From contig BFEA01000025.1 in assembly GCA_003427395.1 (NCBI GenBank), forward strand, positions 2,305,151 to 2,369,150: a stretch of 64,000 nt of DNA, read 5' to 3'. The notes below the pieces were generated by a model, which had not been told where the DNA came from, did not search any database, and saw only the letters and a program-made list of their open reading frames with translations. Shown here piece after piece: positions 1 to 55,425 of this stretch. The position numbers were made by a program, and so were the translations under genes. Positions within the stretch are counted from its first letter, which is position 1. Each line of letters begins with the position of its first letter. The DNA comes from Chara braunii. Its lineage: Eukaryota > Plantae > Charophyceae.

Positions 1-224
1 GAGGAAGGAAAGAGTAAGGGTGGGAAATTGCACTCACCTTGCACTTCAGAGGACCCAGTATCACCTGGCCGTCTTTCAAAATCCTTGCGCACCTTTGATA
101 TTCCAATTTTATGTTTCTCTTGCGCAGTTGCATTAATCGGACTCAAGTACTGTCAAAAAAAGAAACAAACATAGCACGCCTTCGTTAGACAGTCCATGTC
201 AATTCTCTCATATCCAGCAACTGA

Positions 225-286
225 CACACAAGCTTGTAGCCAACCAAACAATTCAAGCAACAGCACAGGAAAACAGCAGCAGCAAC

Positions 287-369
<83 letters not shown>

Positions 370-424
370 GCTTGCAGCCAATCAAACAATTCAAGCAACA
401 GCACAGGAAAACAGCAGCAGCAAC

Positions 425-488
<64 letters not shown>
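225..488 (+). repeat. Duplicated unit, each copy followed by (CT)n(CA)n microsatellites
   Basis: CACACAAGCTTG...CAGCAGCAGCAACCTCTC occurs twice. Confidence 0.95.
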
Positions 489-491
<3 letters not shown>

Positions 492-1149
492 GATCACTGT
501 GAGGTACTCACTGTCATTGCCCAGGTCAGCCTTAATGCAAAACCAAGTCAGTACCGTAGTTCCGGGCTGTTTGAAAACATCTGCAAGATGACTGATTGGC
601 AGTTGCAAGCAAAGGGGAGAGAGAGAGAGAGAGGCCAAAATAGAGGGGGAGTATGAAGTGAGTCCAGCACAGCGTGGTCTACCCTTTTACCCAGTTAACA
701 GCCCGGGAAAAACGGGACTTAATGAGATGAAGTGGATGCAGACGTTAATTTCAGACACCTCAGTGTCTTCAGTGGTCTTCATTACACAGCTGGCTAGCTG
801 GCTTGCAGATGACCCACCCCTTTGTGGCCAGAAAAGAGTCACAGACCCTTTAAAGGCCGGAAAACAACCCCGCCAGACCCTTCTCATTCTGGATATTTGT
901 TACACCTGGACTTCAAGGGCTTAACTAGAGTCACATTGAAAGCCACACATCACTCCCACCGATCAATTTTGAGCTGGTGGGACCAAGGCTTTGCCACTGT
1001 GCCCAACCAACCACTGTGCATCTGCTGCAGACTCTACCAACCCAATTCTGGTGCGGCGCCCATTCTGAGTCATTCTAAGAACGTCTGCACATCCGACTGG
1101 TCATTCTGATTTGACGGACAACTGGCAATCGATTGCAAGTCTCCCGATT

Positions 1150-2355: not shown

Positions 2356-2795
2356 ATGGCCAGTGGCTGTCTGTTTAGGGCAAGTACATTTTGAAGCGGC
2401 CTATGGCGAGCACATGACTCCGTTTAGCGAGGTCAGTACATTTCGAGCGGCCTATTCTGCTACATGAAGGGTGGGTTGACGCAGGCTTTGAACTCGTGAC
2501 TTCGCGGATATTTGTAGTTAGTTAGGACGTGCCTTGTGAAGTGATTCGAGCTCGCGATTTCTTGGTGAGGATTGATGGACGCGATTTGAATATGTAGTTC
2601 GCTGGTTTTCCTTTTTTCGAGGGGCTGTGTACTTGACGGGTTTTTGGACTTCCCTACGGGGATAGGTACCTGACTATTTTTTGGACCAGATCAGTAGAGG
2701 TGATATCAACCAGCGTTCTAGTATCTTCTAGGCGTAGTTTTTCTGACTTTCTATATCGGCAGTTCGTGTGAAACTTCCAACACCGACTTTCAAAA

Positions 2796-2842
2796 GACCC
2801 CTGATGAGTCGTGGTGGGCGGCCACGCGAAACCGGTCGGGTC
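2796..2842 (+). ncRNA. Minimal type I hammerhead ribozyme
   Basis: GACCC-CUGAUGA-G(U)CGUGG-UGGGCGG-CCACG-C-GAAA-CCGG-UC-GGGUC. Helix I GACCC/GGGUC, both core boxes intact, helix II with a U bulge, helix III reduced to the palindrome ACCGGU. Predicted cleavage after C2837 (GUC). Confidence 0.88.
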
Positions 2843-3106
2843 CTACGCCAAGCGGCTTCGGTCGCAAGTGTGATCCAAGCTTTTTCTTAATATCAAGTCG
2901 CGTTCGGGTTTCGTTGTACGACTGCTTTTTGCGTCTCCTACCTCCTTTCCTCATTGTCTTTCCTCTCCCTTCCTTCTCCTGCTGATTGATTGAGTTCGTC
3001 AGGATTGGTCCGTTCATTCTTCGTTTCGTGAATGCTGTAATCTGACTTTCACGCACGAGGTAACCGACGTAGAAGTAGTACTATCGTTGAGTGGCCTCGA
3101 GTTACT

Positions 3107-3393
3107 ATGGCGACGAACGGCAACAATTGTCGACAATCGGTCTTGCTATAACTGTGGTCAGAATGGTCACATTTCTCGCTATTGCCCCCTCCCTGATAGG
3201 CATACTAATCTCCCTCCCTCCTCCAGTACTGCGATAGTCCCGGCTCAACCTTTGCTGTCCTATCCTGCTGGTAGCTCTACCGGTGCGAACTCAAGCGGTA
3301 ATTTCACCGGGCAACAGTCTGGGCAGTACTCTGATCGTGGATGGCTGCGCAACCGGGTCGCTCGAAGGGATTGTTACAAAGATCAAAGAACAA
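3107..3393 (+). pseudogene. Frameshifted, truncated retroelement ORF with CCHC zinc knuckle (gag/nucleocapsid-like)
   Basis: ATG 3107 MATNGNN, frameshift, VDNRS-CYNCGQNGHISRYC (3144-3185, CX2CX4HX4C), low-complexity linker, then LEGIVTKIKEQ in another frame; cut off by a MITE at 3394. Confidence 0.75.
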
Positions 3394-3684
3394 CAGCCGG
3401 GCCGCCCGGGTCACCCTATTTTCCCGGGCGGCCCGGCCGTGCAGGGACCAGGGAAGGTCCCAGCCAAAAAAGCAAAAATAACAAAACAATCCAAAAATCC
3501 GAAAAAAAAACTATGTTATGCAGAAAAATCAACTGAACAACTTGTGCCTCAGGGTCACATCGCAATTCTTTACGAATTTTTTTAAAATAACAATGTAAAT
3601 TAAAAAATAGTTTTTATTTTTTTCATTTTTAGTATCTTTTTGGTCCGGCCGGGCAAGTGGACCCGGGCCACTCTGGTAGCCTAG
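3394..3684. mobile_element. CTAG-MITE copy, one end clipped
   Basis: Shares GC-rich subtermini and internal core with the other copies; ends CTGGTAGC-CTAG. Confidence 0.8.
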
Positions 3685-3904
3685 ATAATAACATCATAAT
3701 AATAACAATATTATTAATTAATAATAAATAAAGTCATGAGTCAGTCTGAACTTGTCGACAAAGTGGGCCCGAATGTGATAACATTGCCTGTGGATAACGA
3801 CAAGACAGTTTGCAACGAACACCAATCATTAGGTCGCCCTCATGATTGCATTAATTAACTTCAGATGACAGCTCACTGCCGCAGCCACGACGAAGGCCTC
3901 CGTT

Positions 3905-4457: not shown

Positions 4458-4754
4458 CTAGGCTACCAAGTGGCCCGGGTCCACTTGCCCGGCCGGGCCA
4501 AAAATATATAAAAAAATAAAAATAAAAATAAAAAATATTTCTCCATTTAAATGTTTATTTTAAATTTGGTAAAGAATTTCGATTTGACCCTAAGGCAAAA
4601 GTTGTTCAGTTTTTTTTTCTGCATAACATTATTTTTTTTTCCGATTTTTTGGATTTTTTTTTTTTTTTTTTTTGGCCGGGACCTTCCCTGGTCCTTGCCC
4701 GGCCGGGCCGCCCGGGAAAATAGGGCGACCCGGGCGGCCCGGCTGGTAGCCTAG
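4458..4754. mobile_element. CTAG-MITE complete copy, inserted in an AAATTGGT repeat tract
   Basis: CTAG-GCTACCA ... TGGTAGC-CTAG terminal inverted repeats. Confidence 0.88.
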
Positions 4755-8308: not shown

Positions 8309-9539
8309 AATGAGCTTGCCAGTGACATCATTCATGTACAAAATCACAAACACGAAGCGACGGCTCCCTTGGCGAACGACGCGACGTACTGTGCGACCCA
8401 ATCCTATTCCTCACTCATTAAATTAATATGATCTCCACACCACTCCTCCAGGGATGGGGGGAAGGGGGGGGGGGAGGGAGGTGGAAATTCAGGCCTGCAG
8501 AAGGTATATGTCAGGGGATGAACCATTAACGCAAGGGAGGGAGGGAGGGAGGGAGGGAGGGTGGGAGGGAGCTCCTTCTATCCGACGATGGAGGTGAGGA
8601 GGTACAGACAACAAAAAGTGGATAGAATACGTACCATTGGGCAGTTTTCCTTGGCGGGAAAATACGCTCGCGCTTCCAGAAGCACCATCGCCGCTTGCAG
8701 TGGCGAAGCCTCTCGACCTCGCCGAAACAGCGATGGCGGCGGCAGCGGACAGAGAAGAGGAAGAAGACACAGCGAGTGACGCAGTCGCCGCCGCCATCTT
8801 CGAAGCTCCTCGAACGACAGCTATGGCGTTAGTGGATATTTGTTGCGCGTTTTTCGCTAACGACAACATGTGAAAGATGCACCGCACGCCACGTTAAACT
8901 TCCTCCAGTCACGCCTAAGGGCGGTTCCCGCTCGCTCTCAGGCTGGCACTCAGCCCAGCTGGCTTACCCGCCTAACCCCTTAGTTCTCCGCCTCTCGCTT
9001 TCTCTCGACTGGATAGAGGGAGAGGACGAGAGAGAGAGGGAGAGAGCGAAGGGAGGTACGCAGAGACAACGAAGACGTGCTATCGCTGGGGTTCTCAACT
9101 ACGTAGGTACGCAAAGGGCCTCTTCGAGCAAAAGTACACAGGACGTACGTACAAATGGAAGGGCCGGTCTGAAACGGAGGAAGGGATGCCAGAGCGGTCC
9201 GATTAGCGACACGTGTCTCGATCCCATGGATTGCATCATCGCCACGAGGGCGGGCATCAAGATTATCTGATCGTGCTTGCGTTCTTCCCAGGCCATCCTG
9301 GAACCCAGGTGGCTGCAGCCTCAGAATATGGCCAAGAGACCAGATGGATTGCTCCCCCAACTCGTACGGAAAAGATTAGTGCATTGTCCAGACTCTGGAC
9401 AAGCATTGGAGAATGCCCTCACAGTTCCGGAAAATCACAACTTTGTCCTCCAAGAAGCACCGGTGCTTCCACTTTTGGCACTGGCAGGTCATGATGCCAT
9501 GCACAGGCCAGCGAAATGACACCACGTATTAGTGACAGG

Positions 9540-9628
9540 TTTGTGTTAGCAATAGGCACCACTCACCCATGTCGGGACGACACCGATTTGTGTTAGCAAT
9601 AGGCACCACTCGCCCATGTCGAGACGAC
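9540..9628. repeat. 47-bp tandem duplication
   Basis: TTTGTGTTAGCAATAGGCACCACTCRCCCATGTCGRGACGAC twice. Confidence 0.9.
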
Positions 9629-12370
9629 TTGGAGCTACAATAGGCTCGGCTGGCTCGCATGATGCAAACGGCTTCTGGCATGAAAATATGGCAGAAGGCA
9701 AGTGGACATGCCTTCGGCCCTTCTTTTCAAAGACGCTCATACTCAGCCTCAAAAACTCCACTATGCTTTCGCGTGCTATGGTGATGGAGTCGTGCAAAGG
9801 TTGTTGATATTGTCAAACAGAATCAGGACATCATGCAGGTAAGGAAGTGTTCCTCACTATTACACTTATCGAGGCTTTGTATATACACACGCTATATAAT
9901 AAGGATGTTCCAGCAGCGGAATTGAGGGAAACAGAAAATTAAATAAGCAAAGATTAAAGACAGTTGTCGAATGTACTTGATAACAAACAGGAAATACTAA
10001 TTAGGTTGTTGTTTTGTCCTTTACATAAATGATTTTTTCCCTAAAAATCTTAATTTTTTGCACGCTTAAGTTTGAAAAATGAGTTGGTGATATTCAAGGT
10101 GGATCAATTACGATATTCATTCATAATATAGTAGTAAATAAAACCTATCCTTACTGTTATATTTGGAAAAAAAAAGGTTATAGAGTTTTATGATTTGCAT
10201 AGGATTTACTTGCCTTGTATTTTAAATAAGGTCATGTCAACAATAAAAACAAAAAGGTTGTATTATTTATAACTGATGTAAAAAATGGTTCAATCGTGTG
10301 ATCAAAAGAACATGCCATCTTTATAATGTTTAAGAAAATATATGGTACAACTAACTAAAAATATAAGACAAAGTTGGTAAGAATATATTAAGCTTTATGG
10401 TTACCATATAATTCAATTAACCCTTTTTGTATAAAAAATGACAACAAACAAATAATGATTTATGTAACTAATGAAAAATAAGTTATTAATTATATGTAGA
10501 CAACGGGTTATAGATAAATTGTTCAGAATCAAAATACAACTTTTAAATATGTACTAATATACAATGGTCAAAAAAATGTATCATCATTCATTGTATTTAA
10601 GAAATACTAAAGGACTCGATAAGGAATATTACAAGAAATTGTCACCACATTTAAAGTGTCACACATTGTACAAAAGATACATTGGACTCATATTTAAAAC
10701 AACATCATGCTTTAAATTAAATTGAAATAGTAGCGTAACACAAAATCAGTATGAGGGCAGCTAAAAATTATACGTAGAATATGAGTCACAGCAATAATAT
10801 CAAATTTTATTATCGAGTTAAAATTTGATAAAAATGATTTATTTTTTTTACAATTTAAGGTTTTTTACTCTTTTATGTTACAATTCACATAAAGCTTATG
10901 GTGAAATAATTAATAGACGATATTCTCAAGTTTTTACTTGTGATGATATTGAGTCCTTATTTCATTTTTTACTAATCATTGTCGATAATACAAATCAATA
11001 AAAAAAATAATATTAATATTAAATGTTAAAATTATTAACTTTTGGCCTATGTTACCAGAGTGGCTTGGGACCCCTTGCCGAACCAGGCAAAACAATTATT
11101 AAAAATAATAATAATAACTAGCTTTTCCGAGGTACCCGGTCGGGCACGTCTCGCCCGGATAGGAACCTCACCTGGGGTACCCTGGGCATGAAAAAAGTCC
11201 ACCAATTTTTTTTATTTTTTTTTTATCTGTGGGGTCTTGCTCGCTCTCCCAATAGTCCCAAAATTTGGCCTCATTTTTTTTTCAGGCATATAGGTTTCAG
11301 TGCGTCAAGGAGGGGTGAGGGTTAGGGGGAAGGGGAGGGGTTGCAAAAGCGGGGTAGATTAGCGGTTGCCCACTTCGCAGGAGGGGGACGGACACTATGG
11401 AGGAGGAGGAGGGAGGAAGACTAATAAGAAGGATGGGGGGAGAGAGAGACTATGGCAGAGGAATGAAGACTACTATAGAGGAAAAGAGAGGGAGTTGCAG
11501 TGGAGGAAAAAGAAAGGTAGACTACGTGGAGGGAGGTTAACTGGTGGAGGATGGAGGCGAGAGGGAGACTGTGAATGGAGAAAGGAGAAACGGAGAGCAT
11601 ATGGAGGGAGGAAGGAGAAAGGGAACCCCTATGGCGGATCCAGGAGGTGAAAGAAGAATCGCTATGGCAGAGGATGATGAAAAAAATGATGAAGAAAAAG
11701 TAAAAGAAGAAAAAGAATAGAAAAAGGCAAAAAAAAAATGAAAATAAGAAAACGAAGAACCGAAACGAGGAAGACGAGGAAGAAGAAGGAGATAATGATG
11801 GCGTGGATGGAGGGCCACAATGATCACATGGCTGGAAGGCAATGACGATGGCGCGGCAGGAGTGCAGCAGGGCAACGACCACGATGGCAAGGACGACCAC
11901 GACATGACCACGATGGCAAGGACAACATCAGCAAGGCAATGACAAACTAGCGCGGGCAATAGTCCGACGGAGGGCGCAGAGCCGCGCGCAAAGCCCCGAG
12001 ATTCGAATTCAAAATTTCGGGACTTCAGCGGCGTCGATCAATGCAGATCAACAGCTTAGGCAAAAAAAAAAAGACATAAAACAAGACCTACCTGACCCCG
12101 AAAATTTTTGTGTCTATTGAAAAAAAAAAAAAAAAAAAAAAAAATGAGTGGCCATCCTCGACGATTTTTTATTTTTGTTGGGTTTGGAAACACAACTTCC
12201 AAATGTATATGTATGCAGGGTAACTGGCCTTCGGGACGGGCCGAACGCCCGAACCCGAACCCTCGAACGTACGGTACACCTTGGGGATGCTTACGGTCGT
12301 TCGAGCCGAACGTGGACCAAAAAAAACATAATAATAAAAATAAAATATTTTAAAATTTTTTTAAAAAAAT

Positions 12371-12677
12371 TAGGCTACCAGAGTGGCCTGAGGCCACTTG
12401 CCCGGTCGGGGCAAAAAAATTAAAAAAAAAATAAAAGGATAAAAATAAATTTAAATTTTCTTAGCAAAAACTAAATATTTTTTATTTAAAATATGGTAAA
12501 ACATTTCGATGTGACCCTGAGGCAAAAGTTGTTCAGTTTATTTTTCGGCATAACATAGTTTGTTTTTGGATTTGTTTGAATTTTTTTTTTTTTTTTTTTT
12601 TGTAGGACCTTCCTTAGTCCTTGCACAGTCGGGCCGTCCGGGAAAATAGGGTAACCCGGGAGGCTCGGCAGGTAGCC
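12371..12677. mobile_element. CTAG-MITE copy nested in a larger TIR-family fragment (about 12218-12850)
   Basis: TAGGCTACCAGAGTGGCC ... CAGGTAGCC; same internal core. Confidence 0.8.
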
Positions 12678-13292: not shown

Positions 13293-16200
13293 TGGGTGCA
13301 TGTTTGTCTCAGGCAGTCGGAAGGGGCAGGCAAAGGTCTGATGGCTGTGTGCCGTCTATTCCCACTTGGCATAGCCCTTCCTATCGAAGGGCTGCTCCTA
13401 TTTGGTGTGAAATATGAGCTAGCCCAGTAAGATAGCATGCCAGGATCTCACCCGACGGATACTGGAATCGAACCGGACGATGCATCAGAGTGGGCATGAG
13501 GAGCGACAAATTTCGGTCGTGAGATCGCCAGATCTCACGACCAGATATGGCTGCTCGGCTATTGCATGGCCCCTGAGGAAGGATAACATGCATAAATTGA
13601 GAAATTGTCCATAATTGTTCGATTCCATAAGGGGAATCAAACACGGGTTCAATAGGCGTTTTAACCCTGCGTCCCGAATTTCTTCCTAGAGCGAGAGAGC
13701 CCTCAGACTCAGAATCAGAACGACTACCTTGGACCTCTACATGAAGGAACAACTTAAACGAATTAGGAATGCAGATGAGGAAGGAGTCAAAGTCGAGACT
13801 TGTTCGGACAAGAAATAGGTCGAGAGAGTCATTCGGGATAGAAAGGAAACATCGGGGATAACTAAGTTTATTATCTCTCGTTCTTTTATATTCCGCTTCT
13901 TTTTCGACCTCGGTTACTTTTCCCATTCATAATCCGGTTGTGCCCTATCAGACAGGTGAAAACATCACAAAGAAAACATTCAACATTTTCACTATTTCAA
14001 TCAGTAAAACTTGAATTTCTCTTCCCAGTACTTTTCCCCTTTCACACACCTGCATGCAGAGCAAAGTCAACATTCAACGAGTTCAACCACAAAAGCATCA
14101 TCCGAGTCAAACCCAGAGTCCCACACAAGCGTGCCTCTCACACCTTCCTTCCTTTAAACCTTTCCCTGAGCACCCAAAACAAAAAGAGAAGGGTCATACA
14201 ACGTGTGGGTGCACACAGGTGTGAGGGATCCATGCCAACCACTTACCTTGAGTAGCGTAAGTTACTAGTCCCAGTCGACAACCAACTCACTAGTATTTTT
14301 TGCGGCAATTTCAGATGCAAAGGCGACAAGTCCCACTTAGCTCCAAGCAGTCCCACGTCTGCGCCAAATAGTTTTAAGTGGTCTACGTTGGTACCAACTG
14401 GTACCGAGTGGTTCGCAGCGATACCCACTACTCTAAAGTAATCCCAGGTGGTCCCACGTCCTCCTTTCTCACTTCCAGATGATGTCGTTTGTCAAAACAG
14501 CCTCTCCTGGTTCTCACAAAAATTAAAGGACCATCTAACTCACTCACGTGCCCCACCGGTCCCACTGGTCCCACCTAGACAATGCACGATGTCCCGCCTT
14601 CTGTTGACGTCGAGGAAAAAATAAAATGTCCCCTCCCACTAGTTTTCACTAAATAGCGGTATTTTATGACGTCGCTATCGACAACCAATACTTTCCTTCC
14701 ACTTAGTTTGACCTGACGGCCTTGAATTTCGGCAGCATAACACTGCCAAAATTATCACTGTTTGCGTCAGAAATTTTCGGCAACACTTTCCCACAGTAGC
14801 GGGGGAAATAGCTTGTCGTTATTTTGTTGACCCTGGTGCCGCCGCTAATAACTTTGTCATCCGCCTCTTACTGCCGTAAAAATTCGGCACGCAGGTGAAA
14901 AAACAGCTTGTCGTAGACTTGGTCTACGGTACCGCCGTCAACAACTTTGCCGCCTCTTACCCGCCGTGGTAAAATTTTGGCAGCCTCTAAAGTGGGAAAA
15001 ATGGCTGGCCAAAATTAGTAAAATTTGGGGCATAGGCCCAAATTACACTCTGCCACACCATCGTAGTCCCACAGCATCCCTGGGTCAGAACCGTGGGACC
15101 AGCACCAGCCAGAGGGGAGGGGTGCAGAGTGTTTCCTGCCTTGGCTATGGCTACCCAACTCCTTTCCTCGCGCTCCTCTGCAGATCTATAGCCTCCCCCC
15201 ACGTTGCCTTAGGCAGCACCTCCAGCAGCCAGCAACACTCAAGTGTGCTCGTCACACACTGGCATCACGAGTGCTTTGTGTAGTAGCTGGGGGACAGTTG
15301 CCTGTTCTATAGTGGCTGAGGAGGGCTGGACGTCACTCCAGCCCCAGGCAAAATCGCGTGCTCACAGTGAGCCCTTGATCTGGCCAAGATTCAGGGCTAA
15401 CTGCGGCCACACCTCAGCCACGGCCTTAGTGAGGGCAGTTTCTTTAACTGCCCTCATTTTCTTTTTCTTTTCTTTTGCCCAGTTATCTCGGAATTTCACG
15501 AGGTAGCTGGCCTTTTGTCATTTCCAAAAGTGTTTTTCTTTTATTTTTCTGATAAGGGGTTGAAGAGATACAACCTCTTTCAGTTTGATGTATCTGGACC
15601 CTTTTTCCATGGCAAATACATCGCGGAGAAGGTTGTACTTAGCCTTTTCCTTTTATGACCCCTCAATTTTCAGGCTCCCTCTAAAAACGGGAGCCTGACA
15701 GTTAACTCTGGTAGCTTCTGCCAGAGGTAGCACCACCTGAGGACAAGTGTCCTCACACGAAATAAAGAAAAACAATCGGAAAGAAAAATAAAAATAAAGC
15801 TAATTCTAACTATACTGCACATGACCCTTACCTCAACCAAGTGCATGATCTTGCATGCAACGGCCCTCCCACCTTTTGCTTTGCCCTCCCCTGAAAACAG
15901 GGAGGGTGGTTGTCAGTTTGGGAGGAGTAGGACCTCCCCCTCCCATCTCTCACGTTCCTCCTCTCTTCCCAACCCCTTCAATCCGTCCTTTACGGGGGTA
16001 CTGTGGGCCGCGAGATTCAATATCTTACGACCACAGTAAGTCTTCCCAAAACGAAATGGGAGCATTTGTGCTCCCACATAGTCTAAAAGACTGTTCTTCT
16101 TTCTTTTGTTCTCACGAGGTTGTTGCCTCGTTCATTTTTCTTTTTATTTTTTATTATTTTTTTTTATACAGTTTTAGCTTGTTTCATCCCTTTCCGTTTT

Positions 16201-16662: not shown

Positions 16663-17592
16663 ATGATGTCGTTGGCATAAGCCAACGGCCACAGTAACCT
16701 CCGCCAGCCTTGCTGGCATTTCCCCCCCCACTTGCCTTCCGATATGTAGACCCAGGTACGATTCCTATCGGGGAATCAAAAAATTTGGACCATTTGCTCG
16801 ATTTACGGGTGCCATCCTCGTGTAGGGGCTGTGCTATAGTCGCGCGGCCGTTCTCAGCCGCGAGATCAGGAAATGACCACGCTTCAATCACGGGAGCTAG
16901 TCTCGTCGCCCTTCTACTTGAAGGGTAACAACCCAGCAGGTCGCCGGGTTCAGGCCAACGGGCAACTCTAAAAAGGAGCTACCCCGGTAGGTCATCGTCA
17001 AATTTGATCCCAGTGTCAATTGGGTGGAAGTTCTGTGCGATACCTACTGGGCTAGCTCCTATCGCGAAAGTTATCCCTGCCGCTCTTCTATTTGAAGAGC
17101 TGCGGCCCAGTAGGCCGCTTATTCCCTGGCGCAGGCCGGCGCAATAATGCCTTCCTCTTTTCTGCGCAGATGCATTCTGCCTACCTCGTTTAAAGTCAGT
17201 CGCCCTGCCACCGGATCACCCGGTTTTGGTCCAGTAGGCCTGGCAATCCACCTCTCTTCCTCGTGGTTTGCCTTGGACCCCTGACGTTCATCTTTCTAGA
17301 AATAACACGACAGTCTAGCCGCGTTAGCTCTTCTCATTGTCGCCATACCCCTCACGGGGCTATATTTTTCGTTTTTTTAGTCATGAATTGCGTGGTTATC
17401 AAAGTTATATTTATTTTAGTATTTTCTCAATCATTTTATCTCTTTCCGACCTTATTTCAGTGTAAGAGTGCCCGGTTGAGTCGAAATACAGTTCAACAGC
17501 GTTTTCATTTCATCAAACCAAATCTTTTCAAAACAAACTTACTTCAGTGTTTGGACATCGTCCGACATTGAAAAAATACATGGCAGATACCC

Positions 17593-19704
17593 TTGTCAGG
17601 GTTTCTGTCCCGACACCACGTACTCAAAGATTGTAAAACATGGTTCAAGTGCGGGGGATCGCTTGTAATCCAGTATATCGTCTCATGGAAACCCAAGTGT
17701 CATTTTCAGAAATGCCTGTTGATCTCCCTCCTGAAAAATTCACGTGTCATCGAAAGAATTGTGAAGTGGGACATGCGCTCTATACTTCGATTATATAATG
17801 TTATCAAAGACTTCTCGAACAGGTCAACGAGGAAGTATCTTTGTAGGTTGATCTCTCAAATTGTTTTGAATAAGTTTGGTCTTAGTCTGAGTGTTGTCTT
17901 GCTAATCAGAGTCAAATTTGATGACAGAATTAGCATTTGTGAATTACGTAAGGTAACTAATGACATTTTTATCAGTTATGACTTACCCTCTTTCTTCTTA
18001 CGTAGGGCTCGAAGGAAGACTCCGATCGTCGGGAAGAAAAATCGAATGGTTGGCGAGTTGTTGTACAATCACAGGGAATTGAGTACTTGTAATGTGTCGA
18101 CCTATCGCTTTACAGAACTCCCCTTGGCACGTATGGATAGGCACGTGCACTTTCATTTGAAGAAGGCTTTCGTGGATCACCATCTGTTAACCAATGCTAA
18201 TAACATTGCAATTGCACATAAGTCTGACGGAGTGTTGGCTTTGAGCTCGGACGTTGAAAAAGGTTTTGGGAGTTGGAGAAACGTTCAGGTAAGCTATCTC
18301 GCATATCGATTAATGTGTAGTCATCTTGTATGATCTCATATAGTGATGCAGGATGCTCTCGATTCTATACTCGTGATGTCATGAAGTTGAAACAACAATT
18401 TGATGGGTTGGTTCTTACTCCCCTCGATCGTGTAACCGGGGGCAGTTGTTGTGATGTGCCCAAACATCTATTACGAGGTGATGATGAATACGTTCGTCAG
18501 AAACCCGAGGTACACGATTGTTTCTGTTATGGAATCTGGGGTACTGCGTGAAGTAAGGGAGAACATGATGCCGGTTGGGCTGCAGAAGTTCGTCCGTTGG
18601 GACAACTCTGGATCGGTGGGCTCAACCTATGTTATGCCTAAAGATAAGGATCTGACAAGGTATCGCCCTATCTGCCCTTCCTATAATGAACCCATGGTTC
18701 GCATTGGGAGGGTTGTTGCTACGGGACTGAATTTCCTTTTGTCAAGAATGCCTACCAATTGTCATTTCAACTTTCCGGTTGTCTCGCAGCTGACGACGAA
18801 ATTGAACCATGCTAGTTCTAGGGTATACTGACTTGGACGTCCGACTAGTCTCACTGCAGATTGCTATGATATTAAGAATATGTTTAGCAGATTACCCCAT
18901 GCTGATATCGTGAATGTGGCACGATGGTTACTAGACCCTCATTCGAGGAAGGGCCAACATTTTGTCAGAGTCAACACGAGAGGTCGTGGTGCTTCTTTCG
19001 GTAGCACTTCTGGAGCCGATCATTGGAGGATAATAGAGTTTGGTGACCTGCTAAAGTTGCAGCACACCTACACTTACACCACGACTGTTTTGCTCAGACA
19101 GGATGTTGGGATACCTATTGGAAAGAGTACTAGCCCTCCGTTGACATGTATTTTGTGCGCTTATGCGGAGTGTATATTCTTGAATAGTCTGGGACGTTAT
19201 GCCCGTTATGAGTTTGGCATCCAGCTGGTTGATGATTTAACGTTTGTAATTGCATCCCTCTCCGGAGAAACTTTGGAATGGGTGCTGCAATGTTTTTCGA
19301 AGTGCTACCCGCCGAATCTCACCTTGAAACAAACTGATGCGGGGGATAGTAATTTGTACTTCCTGGGCTGTGAGGTTAGGTGCTCCAACACCTACATTCG
19401 GAATGTTCAACTTTCGCGTAACGAGACTAGCTTGTGGACACTGGACAATCAAGAATTCTAAACGGGGCAGTCCTTCTCATGGGGTACTAAGCAGCAAAAA
19501 AGTGCAGCGATTGGTAGATACCTCCACCGGATCGATCAGAACACCGCAATTCGAAGTGATATTATTGGGCGAGCGCTGTCATTAAGACTCGAACTAAGAA
19601 GGAAGGACGTCCCGGCTAGCTTTTTCGAGAGAAGTCCGCAAACATTTGCGTTTCGGCGAGGCTTGATTTGGAAGCAGACTATGAAACTAGTGACGGGTTG
19701 GTGA
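17593..19704 (+). mobile_element. Decayed Penelope-like retroelement RT ORF (5'-truncated, frameshifts and stops)
   Basis: RT motifs in order: VMPKDKDLTRYRPI, CYDIKNMFSRLPH, LLRQDVGIPIGKSTSPPL, IQLVDDL, YFLGC, then a thumb-like region ending in TGA at 19702-19704 with no downstream GIY-YIG. Confidence 0.8.
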
Positions 19705-19987
19705 GCATTTAGACAGGGTTTTGTCACTTCCACCTAGTATCGTAGTGTGGTTTTTCGAGTGAAGTCGTCGCATATAGTTGGCACTACTGTAATTTTGTCC
19801 TTTGGTTGAGATTTGCCTTTGTACCCTCGGACGAGTGGACTTTTCGACTACGTCGCTTCATGAGGGACTAGTTCATGACTCTTCAGGCGGTCCTGGGCTT
19901 TACTCTGAGTCTGATTGTTTTAACAAATAGAACCTTTGTTTTTTTTTTTAACGTAGGACATCTGGACCGGGGCGGTACGAGGCCCGG

Positions 19988-20509
19988 TAGTGGGTAGCAT
20001 ATTTTGGACACAACACCATGCATACCTATACTATATAGTGTGTGATTACGACTGTCTCAATCTCTTACGATGCACTCACTGCCATCCGCGGCGATGATCG
20101 TTGGGTACGTGGATAAATGGTTGTTGAATGTAAAAAATATAGGTTGTTTAAAATCGATAGTCGTCTTGCCAAAAATATTCAATTGTTGTTTGAATGGTGT
20201 AGTCAAATAGTTGAAAAACAAAAACACAATTCTCAGCTAAAAAATTGAGGCCTTTGGTCGGTGGCGTTATCTCATTGGAGTATAGCCAAGTGGAAAGGCA
20301 TCGGTTTTTGATACCGACATGCAAAGGTTTGAATCCTTTTAGTCGAGCGATTAATTCCAATTCAGTTATTATTTTGAAAGCTGACGTATTATAGTGGGTA
20401 GCATATTTTGGACACAACACCATGCATACACATACTATATAGTGTATGATTACGACTGTCTCAATCTCTTACAATACACTCACCCGCGATGATGATCGTT
20501 GGGTACGTG
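19988..20509. repeat. ~120-bp direct repeats (19988-20110 and 20392-20509) around a ~280-bp spacer
   Basis: TAGTGGGTAGCATATTTTGGACACAACACCATGCATAC...GATCGTTGGGTACGTG twice. Confidence 0.9.
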
Positions 20510-20776
20510 AAATGTTTCGGTGGTCCTTAGGGAAGTGCAATGTTAAAAGGTTGTAACGAGGTTCTTTCTTACGCACTATACTGTTTAGTCACCCGCTTCC
20601 GTGTGTGTTGACTTGACTCCCTTATATGTACTTGAAATGTGATATGATGATATGATGACGCCCGTGCTATCCGGGCGCGAGCAAAAAAACAAACTTTTTT
20701 TTTTTTTTTGCCTTTCTGCACTCTCCTAGAAGGCCCCAAATCCGGGTTCGTTTCCTTTTTTGAGAGTTGGCTATCA

Positions 20777-20962
<186 letters not shown>

Positions 20963-21823
20963 TTAAACGGGCTACGAATGGTTAAAGAGAATCCTTTCGT
21001 GTGGCTTTGTTTTTTTTTATCTCCGATTCGGAGAGGAATTCCGATTTGACCCTGAGCCAAAAGTTGTTTGTATTGCAATTCTACACAACATATTTATTTT
21101 CTGGAATTTTTAAACTTTTATTTTTATTTATTATTATTATTATTTTGCCCGGCCGGACACCCAAGCGTTTATCCGACAGAGCACAAGTTAGGTACCCGGG
21201 CTCCCAAAAAAACAACCTAGAACTGGACTACTTTACCTCACATTAAACTTCTTTATAAAAATTAAAATAAAAAATAAAACAAAAATATATTAATAATCTC
21301 TCACTGTTACCGACTCATATATACATACAGTGAGACTCAAACGAAACAATTTGTCAAAACCCCTCGTTTGTTGTCCTCATCTGCCCTCTCTGCTGACAAT
21401 TTAATGTACAATGTTGTTTCATAATACATATATGTATAGATATACACGTTTACCAGCCCATACGTACAAAGGTCCCCAGGCCGACCTCCGTACGTACGTG
21501 CGTTCGCGGTCCCGTTTGGGGTCCGAACACGAAGACGTTCGGTCCTGACCAAAAATCCTTTCAAGGCGTAAAAATAAATATTTTTTTCTGCATTGTTTTC
21601 TTTAGGTTCTCTATGATGTGAGGTAAATTTTGAAGTTATTTGTTTAGCCAACAAAAAAACACAAATCGCCAAAGATGCCGGTGTCAAAACGTTTTTCAAT
21701 TTTTACTTTTTTTTCACTTTACTTCAAGCCTAAAATAATTTATTATTATTATTAAATAAATTTAATCATTTTCGTATTATGTGAAGGACACATCTATAAT
21801 TTTTCAAAGCATATGGTTCTACC

Positions 21824-23588
21824 CACGGTTGCCAGGCAACGTACTCTGGCCCCTAAGCTGACCCTCCACTGTTCGGGCGTTCCGGTCCCCGTACAAAGCC
21901 CGAACCTGAAGGGGTTCGGATCCCCCCACAATTATTTTGGCACCTAAATATTCTTATTTTTTCCTGAAACTTTTTATGTAGGTTCTTTGTGACAAAAGGT
22001 ATTTCCCTCTTGATTTTGAAGCCATTCTGTTGAGCCCCCCCCACAAAAAAAAAAATCGGCGAAGATCGTCGTGTTGAAACTTTGCTTGCCCAATCACAAA
22101 TTTGACTTTTTTTTCTTTTCACTTTTTGTTTTTCCTTTATTTCGGGGCATGTAAAAAACTATTATTTTTTCAAACTTTTTGTATATTATCTTCTATTATG
22201 TAAGATACGCATACATAAATTTTCATGGCATTTGTCACTGACAAAATAAAATAAAAAATCACCAAAGATGGCGGCGTCAAAAACATGCTCGCGTACTCAA
22301 TATTTTCAATCTTGTTTTTTTTTTTTTAATTTTCATTACGATTATTTATTTTTAGTATTCAATTTTTATTCCAAATTTGGTAAAGAATTTGGATGTAACG
22401 TTGAGGCAAATGTTGTTTAGTTTATCCAGCCTGCAAATCCGGTTTCGTCCGGGCAACATTATCCAGCTTACAAATCCGAATAAATAAAAGAGTGTTTGGA
22501 TATTCGGATGTGCTACTTAACTAAATTTATTTCTCGTTTCATTTTTTCTTATTTCTATTATCAATATTTATTTTTCATATTTTATTTTCGTTTCACACTT
22601 GGCAAGGCATCTGGATGTAATGCTCATACAAATGTTGTTTATTTTAGTATTCTTCATAACATATCCTCACGTACTCCCGTACGATCTGGCATTCGGGTTC
22701 AAGCATTCGGCCTGTCCCAAATGCCAGTTAGGGTTACCAGTGTTCGGGTTTCGCAAAACTCTTGATCCCGAACCTGCCGAACGTTCGGCCCCATTTGGGA
22801 ATGCGTCTGCCCGCCCGTGCCAAATGCGAACTAAAAAAAAAAAAAAAAAAAAAAAAAAGTATGCAAAAAAATAAACCGAACAATACCTTTCTCGGCCTTT
22901 TGGCTAAGATCAAGTGTAGTATCTGTTCTGATCAGTTCAATATATGATCCGTGGTCCATTGGGCCACTACGATATTAAATTTATTTTTCTGGGCTGCGAA
23001 GGGGTCATATGGGTAGGCTTGCCTGCTCAACCCCTTCAGCGTTGGCACTGTATTACACTGCAGCAGAGTGTAATACAAATTCCTTGTCGAATGTGAAATA
23101 CAAATAAAATAAGAAAAAATAATAATAAGTTAATAACAAGAAAAACAATTGATAAAAAAATAAGTTAGCGAATGGGCGAGCCCGTTTTCGACACAACCAT
23201 CTTTGCCAATTTCTCATTTCTTCTTGGGCTAAATCTCATAGTTTTTTTTTTTTTTTCAATAATAAAATATTTGAGGTACCAAACTAAAATCAGAACAAAA
23301 TGTCAAAAGTGAAAAACAAAACAAATCAGTGGCCGCACAAGTTTTGACACCGCCAACTTTGCCGATTTTCATTTTTTTCTGGTTTGACAAAATGCCTTCA
23401 GAATGTTTCTGCATGTAGCAAATATCATAGAGAAACAAATTCAACAAAAAAAAGAATGATTTTTCAAACCCTAAATATTTTTTAGTGGGGGCTGATCCCC
23501 TTCAGGGTCGGACCCCAAAAAGGACACCAAACAGCCGAACCTTCATGGGAGACCCACAGGCCCCCCAACGCTCCGCCTGGTAACCATG
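21824..23588. mobile_element. Head-to-head pair of related non-autonomous TIR elements (21824-~22730 reversed; ~22730-23588 carrying U2)
   Basis: Ends CACGGTTGCCAG / CTGGTAACCATG and internal TAGGGTTACCAG; homologous blocks mirror each other and match 12218-12850 and 47060-47400. Confidence 0.6.
22883..23076 (+). ncRNA. U2: Full-length U2 snRNA copy, probably a pseudogene, embedded in a TIR element
   Basis: ATACCTTTCTCGGCCTTTTGGCTAAGATCAAGTGTAGTATCTGTTC (plant U2 5' end and branch-point recognition sequence), stem IIb, Sm-like AUUUAUUUUU, well-paired stem III, stem IV region; 194 nt. Mismatch in stem IIa, loop IV reads AUUACAC, no USE/TATA upstream. Confidence 0.9.
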
Positions 23589-28440: not shown

Positions 28441-28540
28441 AAACCTGCTCGGCCTTTTGCCTAAGCTCAAATTGCAATGTACCTGTTCTGATCATCAGTT
28501 TGATATCTGATTCGTGGTCCATCGGACAACACGATATTAA
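28441..28540 (+). pseudogene. U2: Degenerate 3'-truncated U2 snRNA pseudogene
   Basis: CTCGGCCTTTTGCCTAAGCTCAA...CTGTTCTGATCATCAGTTTGATATCTGAT-TCGTGGTCCATCGGACAACACGATATTAA then an A-run; branch-recognition GTAGTA destroyed; stops before the Sm site. Confidence 0.8.
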
Positions 28541-31240
28541 AAAAATATCGTCAAATCAGAGAAAACGAAACCTGCAACGAATGGTCACACATAAAACATA
28601 TGAACGAGCTGTGGCTCTTGTTTCATACATTGAACGAGACCACTTAAGCTAGGTTGCTGCATGGAGGTTGGAGACCAAAACGACTTGCTGATTATTGCAA
28701 CCCACGAGTTCACACTCAAGCACGACCTGCACAAGCACTTGCAGAAGATGGCAGAGATCATTCATTCTCTACCCAATATGAGATGACCCGTACAAGCCAG
28801 TAAGCAAACTACAACCATGAACATCCCTCATAAGGTGCTACCAATGCATAGGCTTCTATAATGCGCTGAAGTCCAAATGGTTTCAGCTTCTTACAGTGTG
28901 ACGTCTTCAAACCACAATGAGATATTCTGAAGGCACCAAATTGCCAGAAAACTCTGAGCCTCGATAAATATCGGCATCGGGATGAAATGTTTGCACCGGC
29001 ATCAAGACTATCGCGAACATACTATCTGTGATAGTCTGACGAAGTGCATTCGCGAAAAGGAACATAGACGCCCCTTGCAGCGATGACGTGTGGGTATTTC
29101 CTTTCTCACAGAGCAATTGACATCTTCGTTTCTAACACTTACATTCTCCTGTGCGGTCACACGCGACAGCTCTGGGCTTGAAGGGCCTCTAATATGCAAC
29201 AAGTGCGTCTTTAATTGCGAATGTCGGCCCCACGCGAGCATGTCTGGAGAGACATGTCGCACGGGAGCTCAAAGTGTTCTTCATTACAAATGTGCGCCGC
29301 ACAGGAGACCTATTCGGTACCCGGATTATACCCTATACAATAGAAAGAATCTACTAATGGGCAACAGGTGCGTTTTTCATTGCCAACGTAGGCCTCTCAC
29401 GGGAGAGCACCGATCTGCAGCCGGGTCACCCTATTCAGCATTGGCGAATGCCCAAGCCAATGACTACCATTCACGTTCTGCGCACTTCGTTGCTGAGATT
29501 TCTAACGAATGCCCTTGTCGGGTCGTTGAACGTACATCTCTCACATCGTATATTAAATTGCAACCAGTCCAACAGCCATCACACACTTTCCTGAACCTCC
29601 CTCCACTACTACTCACCAAGTGTACCAATCCGAGAACGCAATCTCCAACAAAAACATCAGTAAACTCCATCGCTAAATCTTTCATCGCTCATCTTCTTCG
29701 CTGTTTAATCCGCCTAGTACCTTTACCTTCTTGAAATGTCCAACAGACATGGGTAATTGACTTAGGGGCGCACGGGTGCGCAGCCCGTAGGAGACATTAT
29801 TGGTGACGTTTACTAGGGTGACCGTTGCATGAGAAAAAGGAGTACTTGTGTGTACGTGTCAAGATTAGTGTGTATGTGTTTGTGTGAAACTTCGTGTTTG
29901 TCACACCTGTTATTGTTGGAATGCGTGGGATTTAGGTAATTTGTATGGTATTAAGATATGAGAGACATTTGGCATACCTTGAGTCATAGTTGGTGTCAAG
30001 ATTGGTGGCCGTTGAACCTTGGTGACGAGGCCGGTCGCATGTGTTCGAGTGTTTGTTGTAAGTTTCTTATTTTATTAACTGAAATGTGTCTGACTCAATC
30101 CGGCGCTGAACGTGCGTTTCCGGCGGTGTTTGCACTTACAAATGCAATGCAGGTGGGTCATTTCAACCTGCGGCCCAGGCCGCGCCCTGTCCGATTCAGA
30201 CTTTTCCATTTTACCACGCTGACGCTGCTTTGCCACCGTTTCGACAAAAACTAGGCGCGGGATCCCACAGGCAGCTACCGGTCCCCGCATTTTTCAAAGA
30301 AACTGCCCCCCCCCCCCCAAAGTGGCGTCCCTGCACCTGCCTGCATTTCAACGACAGGCATAACAAACGACAGCGAAAATGTATCGGGGCTAAATGTCTC
30401 AGGAGGGGGAAACGCACCGTGAGGGCTGCGAACACGGGGAGGTCAGGGTCCCCAATTGACAAACGCCGGAATCGTGCATATCAGAAAAACAAAACAAAAG
30501 AAAACAAATGATACACGAAATTCAAATAAGATCAAAAACGAAAAGACAGCCACATCCTCGCAAAAGCGGAGGGAGTGGAAAAGAGCGTGTGCTTCTTTCT
30601 CGTTTTTGGCAGACATTCATTCCCAAATTCGTACCACGCAAGCAACGAGCCCACACCCGCAAGAGCAGGAGACAGAGTACCTCGTCCAAGATGAGAAAAT
30701 GTGCTACTCTTTCCGTCTCTCGTGCCCACACGCACGCACGTTCATGCGCGCAGAATGTGTGCAGATTCCTTTCCTCTCCACATCACCAAACACGACAAGG
30801 GACGGAGAGAGAGAGAGAAAGCGGCCCGTAAGTTGCCTTTCCGTTCTGCACGTAAAAGAACGCGCAGCGAGAGAGTCGGAGAGAGAATACATACGTTCGC
30901 ATCGCAGTGCGGAACAACTGCACGCTAAACACCGAGATTATATCCCTCTCCCCGTCCCCTTTCCCGACCCCTTCCTCCATCAATTTGAACTCTTCGTTTT
31001 TCCTCTTCCGTTTTTCATCAGTCGAAACCATTGTCTTCTTTTATTTATTTTTCCTTTCTAGAGAGAACATCAATCCCGCCACCTGGTCGCTCTAGGCTCG
31101 GCATAGCGGTACCAGGAGTCTCCTATTTGATAGCTGAGAAGGGTGCTGACGGCCGTGACTTTTGGGGCTCGGCCAGGGGAACGCCCGGTAGCTAACCGCA
31201 CGACTTTCTTTTCCCAAGAAAAAAAAAACAAAAAAAAAAG

Positions 31241-45882: not shown

Positions 45883-46980
45883 TCATAGTTTTAGTCTATT
45901 CAACCTATTCCCCGATACCTTTCCCACTTTGGGTGTTCGTCGCTCGATAAAACGTCCCAAAGTATTGTTGAACATTTCCCTCGCGTAACCCAACAGTCTG
46001 AGCTCTCTACTAAGCGTCAGCAGGGACAATTCAACCGGTTCCACAGTAGTCGTACACGCATGAATCCTTAATAATGCACTAGTTATTACCGCCTTCTTTT
46101 GTTTTTTGTCAGAGTAGGACCCAAAACTTTGCATCGACTTATAACGAAATTCCTCACTCCAAACGTTGTCCTTCCCACACAAACATCGACATATCATCAA
46201 CCAATTTTATCCATTGGGCCAGGTTCCTATCCTTACCCAAAGAGCCCATGAAACAAGCCTCATTGAACATGCACAACGGCAGGCTAACGAGGGGGTACTG
46301 CTTTTTCCTATCGACACCCCCATTACTTGCTTGATAATTTTTTATGCGGTCACCGGATACATATTATCCAACTCATACGACACGTACCTAACCACCTGCT
46401 TTGTACTAATGAAACCCACTTTCCTCCCTCTCTGTTTCACAAAGGACACTCCTTTCCCTCTCCTCTTAATGAACACCCTATGCCTCTCTTTCTTACCTAG
46501 TTCATCCGCCAGCCGGATTAACGCTCGCTTAATAGAAGAATGCGGGAGTTCATTAAACATTTCCTTAATATCGAACGACAACTCCTTCACACATCCTCCT
46601 TTCCCTTTAGATTGTGGCCACATTTAGACTTTTTCCATCTTACTTTTTAACTCCCCCGTCGACCTCCTGTTAATAAAAAAAATCATATGTAAAACACAGG
46701 CCACGTTGGCGAAGATTTCACAACGGCCTGTCGAGTAATAAAAGTCTCCAAAGTTCACTTGCATTTAACTAATTGGAGCTTATTTATCCTCAAATTGAAG
46801 TGGCACGAAGGAGGCAGCAGTAGCATCATACCATTCAGTGCTTTAGATATTCTTAGGTGGCTAGATGGCTCAAAAGTAGGAAGGGGTAATAGGGCGGAAT
46901 CTGCAAACATCCTTGTTCTTAGGGATAATGAACGCGTGGTCCAATCTCCCTTTTCCATCTCATTTCCCCAACTTCTCAAA
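45883..46980 (-). mobile_element. Second decayed Penelope-like RT fragment of the same group, internally deleted
   Basis: IIPKNKDVCRFRPITPSY, SFDIKEMFNELPH, IIKQVMGVSIGKSSTPSLA, IKLVDDM, QKKAVITSALLRI; colinear with the 17.6-19.7 kb copy. Confidence 0.78.
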
Positions 46981-52779: not shown

Positions 52780-55425
52780 AACCCACTCTATCGTTCTTGT
52801 CGCAAGGGCGATGGTTCAACAAGATGATTTATTTACTATAAGAGTACTAAGCCGCTTGGCCATTCACGTCGTGAGGGCGATTGAATCCGCCGACTGTTTT
52901 GCCTATCATTTTGATACTAACTCACCCGGTCATTCTCGTCACAAGGGCGATGGTTCGACCGAGTATTTTTGCTTATTATTTTGGTATTAAACGACTTAGT
53001 CGCTCTCCTCTTAAGGTCGATGGTCTGACCGCCTGTTTGTGAATGTGGAAAAAAAAATCAACCCTTCGCCTATTCTCGTCGCAAGGGTGATGGTTTGGCC
53101 GACCACTCTATCACGCTTTTTTTTTTTTTTCCCTTCTTATTCACGACAATAATTGCATATTCATCATGTTGAATTGACTGTATATTTATTTTATTTATCA
53201 ATTATTTTAGACTTATAATACAGAGATTATAAATAAAAGAACAAGTAATACCAATATATGCACACATACCTAGGTTACCAGCCGGGCCGCCCGAGTCACC
53301 CTATTTTTCCCGGGCGGCCCGACCGTGCAAGGACTAGGGAAGGTCCCAACAAAAAAATAAAAATAAAAATAAAATCCATAAATTCTAAAAAAATCCTATG
53401 TTATGCAGAAAACTAAACTGAACAACATTTGCCTCAAGGTCACATCGAAATTCTATAAAAATTTTAAAATACAAATTTAAATAAAAAACTAAGCCACCAG
53501 AGTGGCCTAGGATCATTTGCCCCGCTGGGCCAAAGAGATAAAGAAAAATAAAAATGAAAAAAATATTTTAAACTTCTATTTAAATTTTAAAATTTGGTCA
53601 AAAATTTTGATATGACCATGAGACAAATGCTGTTCAGGTTATTTTTTTGCATAACATAGTTTTTTTTTCGGATTTTTTTATATATTTTTTTCTTTTTGTT
53701 GGGACCTTCCCTTGTCCTAGCACGGGCTGGCCACCCGAGACCCTGGCGGCCCGGCTGGTAGCCTAGTTAAAAAAAATATATTTTTTATTTTTTATTTTTT
53801 ATTTTTTATTTGATTTTTAGCCCAGTCGGGCAAGTGGACCGAGATCACTTTTGTAGCCTAGATAAATGTATAGATATATACATATATATACATATATATC
53901 TCATTAATCTGTTTATTATAATATAATTATATATTAATTTAATTATATAATTTTTATATTGGAATATTGTTACATTTTTCATTCAGCAACACGACTCACG
54001 TCGCAAGGGTGATGGTTCCGTCTTACGAATGGTTGCGTTGACCATCTCCGAAAGGATTGCATGTGTTTCATTTACGTTGCAAGAACGATGGTTTGACTGT
54101 CCGTCCGTACATTTGAGGAAAAGGTTAACCTTTCAACTATTTTCATCACAAGGGTGATGGTTTGGTCAACCACTTTATCATGTGATTTTATTCCAAGAGG
54201 ATTGCATGGGACCCATTCACGTCCCAAGGGCAATGGTCTGGCTGCCTATCTATCCATTTCGGGGAAAGGTCAACTTTTCAGTTATTCTCGTCGCAAGGGT
54301 GATAGTTTGGTTGACCACTTCACCACTCTAATTTTGCTTATATCTCTCACGACAATCATTCGTACGACGATTCACATGACAAGGGTAATGGTCTTGCCTG
54401 ACGAATGGCTGTGTTGACCATTTCTGAAATGATTGGATTAATTTTATTCACATACAATGACGATGGCATGACTTCTTATACGTCCGTTTGAAAAAACTCA
54501 ACGTTTCGATAATTTTCGTCACAAGCAAGACAATTTGACCGAATACTTTATCAGTTTTATTTTACTTATCTCTCTCACTGCAATCATTCGTGCAACAATT
54601 CACATGGAAAGAGCGACGGTCTTACCGCACAAACGATTGTATTGACCATTTCCGAAAGGATTGGATGGGTTTTATTTATACAATGACGATGGTATGACCG
54701 CCTATACGTCCGTTTGGTAATAGGGCGATGGTTTGTCCGACTACTTAGCCATTTTTATTTATTTATATATCTCACGACAATCATTCGTACGACGATTCAC
54801 GTGGCAAAGGCAATAGTTTTGCTGTATAATTAATTGCGTTGACGATTTCTAAGAGGATTGAATGAGTTTCATTCACGTCACAAGGGCGATGAGCTGACCT
54901 TCGATCCATCCGTTTGAAAAATGATTAATTTTTCGACCATTATCACTGCAAGGGCGATGGTTTCGTCGAGCACTTTACCACTTTAATTTTATTTATATCT
55001 TTCAGGTGAATGTTCATTTGACGATTCATGTCGCAAGGGTGATGGTCTTGCCACACGAATAGCTACGTTGACCATTTTCGAGAGGATTGCATGGGTTTCA
55101 TTCACGTCGCAAGAGGGATGGTCTGACTACCTATCCGTCCATTTGAAAAACGGTTAACTTTTCTATTATTCACGATTCAAGGACGATAATTTGGCGGGCC
55201 ACTTTTATTATTTTTATTTTTATTTATGTCTTAAAAGGTAACCGTTTGTGCAAAGATTCACGTCACGATGACAAATATCTTGTTGTATGAGTGGTTGCAT
55301 TGACCTTTTCTAAGAGAGTTGGACGAGCTCCATTCGGGTGACGAGGCCGATGGTGTGACCGCATATCCGTCCATTTGGAAAAATGTCGATCTTTTTGGTC
55401 GATCTCGTCATAAGATCGATGGTTC
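52780..55425 (+). repeat. Degenerate array of the motif CGTCGCAAGGGCGATGGT with a longer higher-order period; interrupted by nested MITEs
   Basis: Motif variants recur every ~60-120 bp across 2.6 kb. Confidence 0.8.
53270..53861. mobile_element. Two CTAG-MITEs: an inner copy (53489-53766) inserted inverted within an outer copy
   Basis: Outer CTAGGTTACCAGCC...GTAGCCTAG is interrupted by inner CTAAGCCACCAGAGTGG...CTGGTAGCCTAG. Confidence 0.85.

Follow-up and report, generated by a model that had tools for sequence, protein, structure and literature searches.

Three types of Chlamys element have been described in the streptophyte alga Chara braunii (Craig et al., 2021, PMC8557442), and one of them, Chlamys-2_cBra, is reported to combine a canonical 3' hammerhead ribozyme with an upstream gag-like ORF of the zf-CCHC type. 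Elements of this clade of Penelope-like elements (PLEs) carry an N-terminal GIY-YIG EN, a CxC linker and pseudo-LTRs (pLTRs), and according to the same source most Chlamys and Naiad elements proliferate without hammerheads, which may simply parasitize PLEs, and insertion normally truncates the 5' end of a PLE and not its 3' end (PMC8557442). The hammerheads located in the flanking repeats of PLEs are described as having a palindromic helix III and acting as dimers (Cervera and de la Pena, 2014, PMC4209133); these minimal ribozymes cleave poorly in vitro and were found with a dedicated relaxed descriptor (PMC4209133). The element type considered here has been known since 2021 (Craig et al., PMC8557442), and the stretch of C. 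braunii DNA that we analyzed (64,000 nucleotides of contig BFEA01000025.1, hereafter the window) adds one decayed copy of it.

The hammerhead and the ORF1 remnant in the window

The region of the window between about 2484 and 3393 is very probably a decayed fragment of a Chlamys-clade PLE, with an N-terminal EN, of the Chlamys-2_cBra type. The assignment was matched on the published description of the architecture in the same host, and the membership of the window copy is read from about 600 nt and about 80 codons of homology, the features of ORF2 being read in related loci. The fragment and its immediate right neighbor consist of the following features.

2484-3040, plus strand: putative pseudo-LTR, recognized by homology to the repeats of related loci as the 3' end region of a tandem copy that lies upstream and is truncated at its 5' end
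2796-2842, plus strand: minimal type I hammerhead, read from the sequence, with the predicted cut at 2837/2838
3041-3106, plus strand: putative 5' UTR, a conserved leader before the start codon of the downstream unit, which was once full-length
3107-3393, plus strand: gag-like ORF1 remnant, recognized by Pfam zf-CCHC and by homology to the C. braunii protein P0005
3394-3688, no strand assigned: MITE-like TIR repeat of a multi-copy family, a breakpoint marker and not part of the element

The hammerhead reads GACCC / CUGAUGA / G(U)CGUGG-UGGGCGG-CCACGC / GAAA / CCGGUC / GGGUC on the plus strand, with a helix I of 5 bp, a complete core of CUGAUGA and GAAA, and a helix II in which the G10.1-C11.1 pair is followed by a bulged U and then by 5 bp. 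At the position of helix III lies ACCGGU, a 6-nt palindrome that is loop-less and unable to close on itself, and the cleavage site is GUC. A loose custom descriptor matched once in the window (128 kb when both strands are counted), at this very motif, against about 0.01 matches expected by chance; in 400 simulated windows of preserved dinucleotide content it matched four times, and in none of the four did helix II reach at least 5 bp. The original prediction had proposed a search with Infernal (Hammerhead_1); cmscan of the window with the Rfam models reported no hammerhead family either at the gathering score or at E ≤ 10. This miss is probably due to a helix III without a hairpin, and we take the silence of Rfam to reflect the reach of its models and do not count it against the motif. 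A covariance model built from 13 hammerhead copies, the window copy included, scores the window motif at 74.2 bits (E 2e-15, the motif being among the model's own 13) and finds no second hammerhead in the window. Folding was uninformative in both forms: the 47-nt GC-rich monomer has an MFE z-score of 0.19, and cofolding of two motifs gave an extended duplex, the nested model being unable to score a crossing dimeric hammerhead. The motif is confirmed as a genuine, core-intact hammerhead, and the claim of a complete minimal type I ribozyme with a GUC site holds.

Downstream of the predicted cut, a leader of 269 nt (2838-3106) extends to an ATG, close to the roughly 265 nt that had been estimated. 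The comparison was made with ten C. braunii loci (L001-L010) on different scaffolds, which were fetched via ORF1 homology alone. In the closest locus, L003, window positions 2484-2800 align with the terminal repeats on both sides (9420-9645 and 14522-14740), and positions 2781-2912 align with both repeats in L001, L004, L005 and L007. The pLTR has an uncertain 5' limit (2356 to 2576) and an approximate 3' limit. Positions 3045-3100 are conserved throughout the loci, even in the three that lack a pLTR (L006, L008 and L010). Homology between window and loci is unbroken across the whole interval of hammerhead, leader, ATG and knuckle. Directly upstream of the presumed pLTR there is a palindromic repeat (2092-2355), whose arms (2092-2147 and 2300-2355) are about 95% complementary and which may be another MITE.

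The ATG at 3107 is the homologous start codon, since it opens MATNGNN in the window where P0005 has MATNDNN, and it aligns with the starts in L001 and L002. With 28.5 bits for Pfam zf-CCHC (cutoff 20.8), the knuckle at 3144-3185, CYNCGQNGHISRYC, was the only match to Pfam among 20 long ORFs of the window. The original prediction of an ATG followed by a knuckle on the same strand stands in these respects and fails in one, as ATG and knuckle lie in different frames in the window copy, separated by a frameshift at about 3125-3128. A second frameshift lies near 3360, and the reading ...LEGIVTKIKEQQ carries on in another frame. Amino-acid identity between the window ORF1 and P0005 is 84% over 77 residues (54-66% with other homologues), and nucleotide identity of the window fragment to L003 is 83.7% over about 600 nt.

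The remnant stops at 3393, and at 3394 a MITE-like repeat begins without the first ~10 nt of its left TIR: in the alignment this copy starts with AGCC, the family consensus with TAGGYTACCAGCC. The right flank of the MITE is unrelated to the element, and no continuation of the element was found beyond the MITE or upstream of 2484. Because the tip of the left TIR is missing and the right flank is unrelated, the junction at 3394 is a deletion breakpoint and not a simple insertion, which replaces the earlier view that a MITE had truncated the ORF. The window copy is dead, with two frameshifts, about 4.3 kb deleted, everything past codon ~95 gone and ORF2 absent. Copies of the MITE-like family measure about 290 bp, are A/T-rich in the middle and are bounded by the TIRs TAGGYTACCAGCC...CTGGTAGCCTAG. 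The C. braunii loci L003 and L007 contain the family too, at similar divergence, and about four to five copies besides that at 3394-3688 occur in the window.

4458-4745, minus strand: MITE-like copy
12371-12669, minus strand: MITE-like copy
53279-53491, no strand assigned: MITE-like copy
53489-53757, minus strand: MITE-like copy

Placement and conservation of the hammerhead in related loci

The covariance model finds the same hammerhead in seven of the ten loci (L001, L002, L003, L004, L005, L007 and L009), which together hold 12 copies besides that of the window. In L001, L003, L004, L005 and L007 the distance from the cut site to the ORF1 ATG downstream of it is 258-499 nt, and in L001, L002, L004, L005, L007 and L009 a hammerhead follows about 4.7-5.0 kb past the ATG. 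The hammerheads at the two ends are situated in direct repeats of 873, ~820, 515, 338 and 271 bp, which have variable 5' starts and a constant 3' end, situated 55-65 nt before the ORF1 ATG in loci with a pLTR. The repeats bear the signature of the partial tandems of PLEs, the 5'-truncated upstream copy supplying the pseudo-LTR. In L006, L008 and L010, mutual homology begins about 70 nt before the ATG, and the unit's own 5' end lies about 55-70 nt (some 65 nt) before the ATG of ORF1. Measured from the 3' end of the unit, the predicted cut lies about 200-240 nt inward. The hammerhead is a 3' feature of the unit, set in front of the next unit by the tandem arrangement. The term "ribozyme-headed", used in the original prediction, has to be given up, since the hammerhead is part of the 3' region of a truncated copy lying upstream, the pLTR; the linkage of hammerhead and knuckle ORF in other copies, which it had also expected, is borne out by the five loci with a spacing of 258-499 nt.

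Individual loci deviate from this arrangement. The upstream repeat of L002 is cut off within the hammerhead and keeps only its 3' part, and in L009 an inverted copy is present. In the upstream pLTR of L003 (9641-9727) two hammerhead cores stand in direct tandem, 40 nt apart, and a deletion of about 228 bp has removed the hammerhead from the 3' pLTR of the same element. In L006, L008 and L010 (ORF1 at 10001 in each) the covariance model finds no hammerhead, and neither an upstream pLTR nor a recognizable 3' end is seen; this subfamily may have lost the ribozyme.

The core is invariant in all 13 hammerhead copies, and three of the six pairs of helix II have changed on both sides (the copies being related, and not 13 independent events). 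The variants are CGUGG/CCACG, CGCGG/CCGCG, GCUGG/CCAGC and CCUGG/CCAGG, to which L002 adds CCUAG/CUAGG. Pairing is retained in 95.5% of the helix II cells, against 21-40% in controls with slid partners, calculated over the whole structure. Helix I is invariant and the ACCGGU palindrome nearly so, and no covariation signal can be drawn from them either way. The expectation that other copies would keep the core and covary in helices I and II is met by the core and by helix II, with helix I left silent. A conserved core together with compensatory change in helix II is the pattern expected of a constrained ribozyme fold. It is unlikely, in our judgment, that the motif has been conserved for a reason other than cleavage, such as protein binding or a promoter function within the pLTR, or that it is carried along as a selfish passenger. 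Such a reading can draw on the weak in vitro activity of PLE minimal hammerheads (PMC4209133), on the report that most Chlamys and Naiad elements thrive without them (PMC8557442), and on the invariance of helices I and III, which leaves helix II alone as structural evidence; it does not readily account for a catalytic core retained by every one of the 13 copies alongside compensatory change in helix II.

Coding capacity of the related units

ORF2, whole or in pieces, lies downstream of ORF1 and in the same orientation in each of the ten loci. Homologues of ORF1 were found in C. braunii only (30 proteins, with P0005 the closest at the 84% given above). An intact ORF1 has about 400-430 aa and consists of the CCHC knuckle, a disordered Gly/Ser-rich linker and three long helices, which the AlphaFold model of P0005 places with confidence at 81-183, 195-246 and 284-345. 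No capsid-domain family and no RRM was detected in ORF1, either by Pfam matches or in the AlphaFold model. Since the fetched ORF1 proteins are just 36-64% identical to P0005, several subfamilies exist.

The N terminus of ORF2 in the related loci shows a GIY-YIG signature, GPxVY..HxYVGST.RDLH.RW.EH...RNE...ALN, joined through a CxC linker to an RT with the motifs SFDIKEMFSNLPH, GIPMGKSSSP and LVDD. The GIY-YIG domain exceeds the Pfam cutoff of 22.6 in the gene models P0038 and P0094 (23.6 and 28.6 bits), where the domain order is CCHC, GIY-YIG, RT; RVT_1 stays below the Pfam threshold at 16.7-20.2 bits, and the pieces of ORF2 match Pfam weakly. Compared with the ORF2 of L002, the ORF2s linked to the knuckle ORF show 51-65% identity. 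Searches of PDB sequences with the RT piece and with an RT profile returned no TERT or RT chains, and a search for protein homologues with the N-terminal piece of ORF2 gave no match, low-complexity words having probably swamped the candidates. Ten relatives looked up from a library of 1.84 billion were eight C. braunii proteins and two metagenome proteins. P0038, P0046 and P0094 are gene models of 1131-1344 aa that hold the RT region and are named CCHC-type domain-containing in their source. Many hypothetical proteins in the C. braunii annotation are suggested to be ORFs of Chlamys elements.

Comparison of the related loci shows an intact unit of about 5.1-5.3 kb, composed of a short 5' UTR, ORF1, ORF2 and a 3' region with the hammerhead. 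The position of EN, N-terminal to RT, is the permuted order of Chlamys and Naiad, unlike the canonical RT-EN. The original prediction had seen in the window the 5' part of a PLE lineage with a hammerhead and a nucleocapsid-like CCHC ORF, and had asked whether a GIY-YIG/LVDD-type RT follows, with a DIRS or Ty3 pol counting against it; precisely this architecture was found in the related C. braunii loci, where the sequence downstream of the knuckle ORF codes for GIY-YIG and RT.

The window copy has no ORF2, many gene models of C. braunii consist of ORF1 only, and retrozymes of animals have been proposed to be pLTR derivatives of PLEs, all of which would suit a non-autonomous derivative, composed of a pLTR and ORF1 or similar to a retrozyme and mobilized in trans by an autonomous Chlamys element. 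We hold this to be highly improbable, because ORF2 remnants lie downstream in 10 of the 10 ORF1 loci, because the copy ends inside ORF1 at a MITE with a truncated TIR and an unrelated right flank, as fits a secondary deletion, and because PLE insertion is described as normally truncating the 5' end and not the 3' end (PMC8557442). A chance juxtaposition of a hammerhead repeat (a retrozyme or a solo pLTR) with an unrelated gag fragment from an LTR, DIRS or LINE element, which the single copy of each feature in the window and the repeat mosaic of the region might suggest, is hardly conceivable given that the order of hammerhead, leader, ATG and knuckle recurs with a spacing of 258-499 nt in five independent loci, that a sixth, L002, retains the 3' part of the upstream hammerhead, that homology is continuous across the interval, and that the downstream ORFs encode GIY-YIG and RT and not PR/RH/IN or YR.

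Three other identities were considered and rejected. A retrozyme does not fit, as related copies are coding (ORF1 and ORF2) and the window holds a single hammerhead. The gag of an LTR retrotransposon, a retrovirus or a DIRS element does not fit a protein without capsid that is followed by no PR/RH/IN or YR, in units whose repeats vary in length. A domesticated host CCHC gene does not fit a frameshifted window copy whose relatives all lie in an element context.

Two stretches of the window hold remnants of RTs of the PLE type.

17572-19701, plus strand: PLE-type RT remnant with motifs FDIKNMFSRLPH, GIPIGKSTSP and LVDDL
46157-46977, minus strand: PLE-type RT remnant with motifs FDIKNMFSRLPH, GIPIGKSTSP and LVDDL

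Both are 25-48% identical to the ORF2s linked to the knuckle ORF, and that on the plus strand is nearer (39-59%) to a second, different element in L007 (~17990-21368). The covariance model finds no hammerhead near either of them. The suggestion that they belong to the same group as the hammerhead fragment is not upheld; they represent another Chlamys lineage and not the missing part of the window copy.

The remainder of the window offers several separate observations. A tRNA-Gln (UUG) gene (20276-20348) lies about 600 nt downstream of an RT remnant, and a full-length U2 snRNA gene (22883-23083, 136.6 bits) is found 5.5 kb from a truncated U2-like pseudogene (28441-28575, 50 bits); the U2 snRNA gene and the tRNA indicate a eukaryotic nuclear context. 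A second CX2CX4HX4C knuckle, CHSCGLIGHTPRYC, occurs in an ORF of 121 aa (59721-60086, plus strand), for which tblastn detected no homology to the Chlamys ORF1 family. Long (CA)n/(GA)n microsatellite blocks occupy window positions 196-591; Chlamys elements are reported to target (CA)n, and no element end was seen to abut these blocks.

Relation to known systems and possible function

The family to which the window copy and the loci belong shares with Chlamys-2_cBra the host, the order of N-terminal GIY-YIG EN, CxC and RT, the 3' hammerhead, the zf-CCHC ORF and the pLTRs formed by partial tandems. No difference in kind was found, the window copy being a frameshifted and 3'-deleted fragment. The hammerheads of metazoan PLEs (PMC4209133) resemble that of the window in being minimal and of type I, in occurring in both flanking repeats, in the G10.1-C11.1 pair and in the palindromic positions 15.2-16.2, which imply dimeric action; their long helix II, with one base bulged out at the 5' end, recurs in the subfamily of the window, L003 and L004 and in L002. 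Unlike in metazoan PLEs, the host element here has a permuted EN-RT order and an additional ORF1, and the hammerhead differs in its loop-less 6-nt ACCGGU helix III and in its streptophyte algal host. Retrozymes likewise have type I hammerheads in their repeats and a proposed link to the pLTRs of PLEs. Unlike them, the Chara family is coding and autonomous in design, and the window has no tandem array of short hammerhead units.

LINE ORF1 proteins and the nucleocapsids of retroviruses and LTR elements combine a CX2CX4HX4C knuckle with a helical multimerization region upstream of an RT ORF. The Chara ORF1 shares both the knuckle and the helical region, a likeness that suggests a role as an RNA-binding chaperone in packaging. 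It is unlike LINE and LTR elements in that no capsid-like or RRM domain was detected and in that ORF2 consists of GIY-YIG and a PLE-type RT. Other PLEs also have an extra ORF1, labeled as coiled-coil in Fig. 1 of Craig et al. (2021), with which the long helices modeled for P0005 would fit. Unlike the ORF1 of that figure, the Chara ORF1 begins with a CCHC knuckle of the retroviral type, the comparison being one with the figure label alone.

From what is known of PLEs and hammerheads, a sequence of events can be proposed. Transcripts that read through two repeats would be cleaved at GUC|G by hammerheads that pair as dimers through their ACCGGU palindromes, such pairing being needed because helix III is a loop-less palindrome. 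The cut would yield a unit-length RNA, bound and packaged by ORF1p through its knuckle and helical multimerization region, and ORF2p would nick the target and carry out target-primed reverse transcription. As the cut lies about 200-240 nt inside the 3' end, the cut RNA would be a circular permutation of the DNA unit, which, speculatively, fits the tandem habit. A further step, at which hammerhead and ORF1p cooperate, so that dimeric hammerheads excise the permuted RNA, ORF1p acts as chaperone to a weak ribozyme and the cut, possibly circularized RNA serves as template, is decidedly doubtful, its one supporting observation being the offset between the cleavage site and the end of the repeat. 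If true, it would explain how tandems and pLTRs are regenerated. The ribozyme may also be dispensable or selfish, because most Chlamys and Naiad elements are described as doing well without hammerheads (PMC8557442).

The comparison of loci adds to the anatomy of these elements the 5' end of the unit, the position of the cut, the compensation in helix II and the duplication of the core in L003. As was pointed out in 2021, the occurrence in a streptophyte alga of PLEs that combine a gag-like ORF with a hammerhead bears on the association between ribozymes and retroelements and on how the PLE clade, related to telomerase, spread into the green lineage in ancient times.
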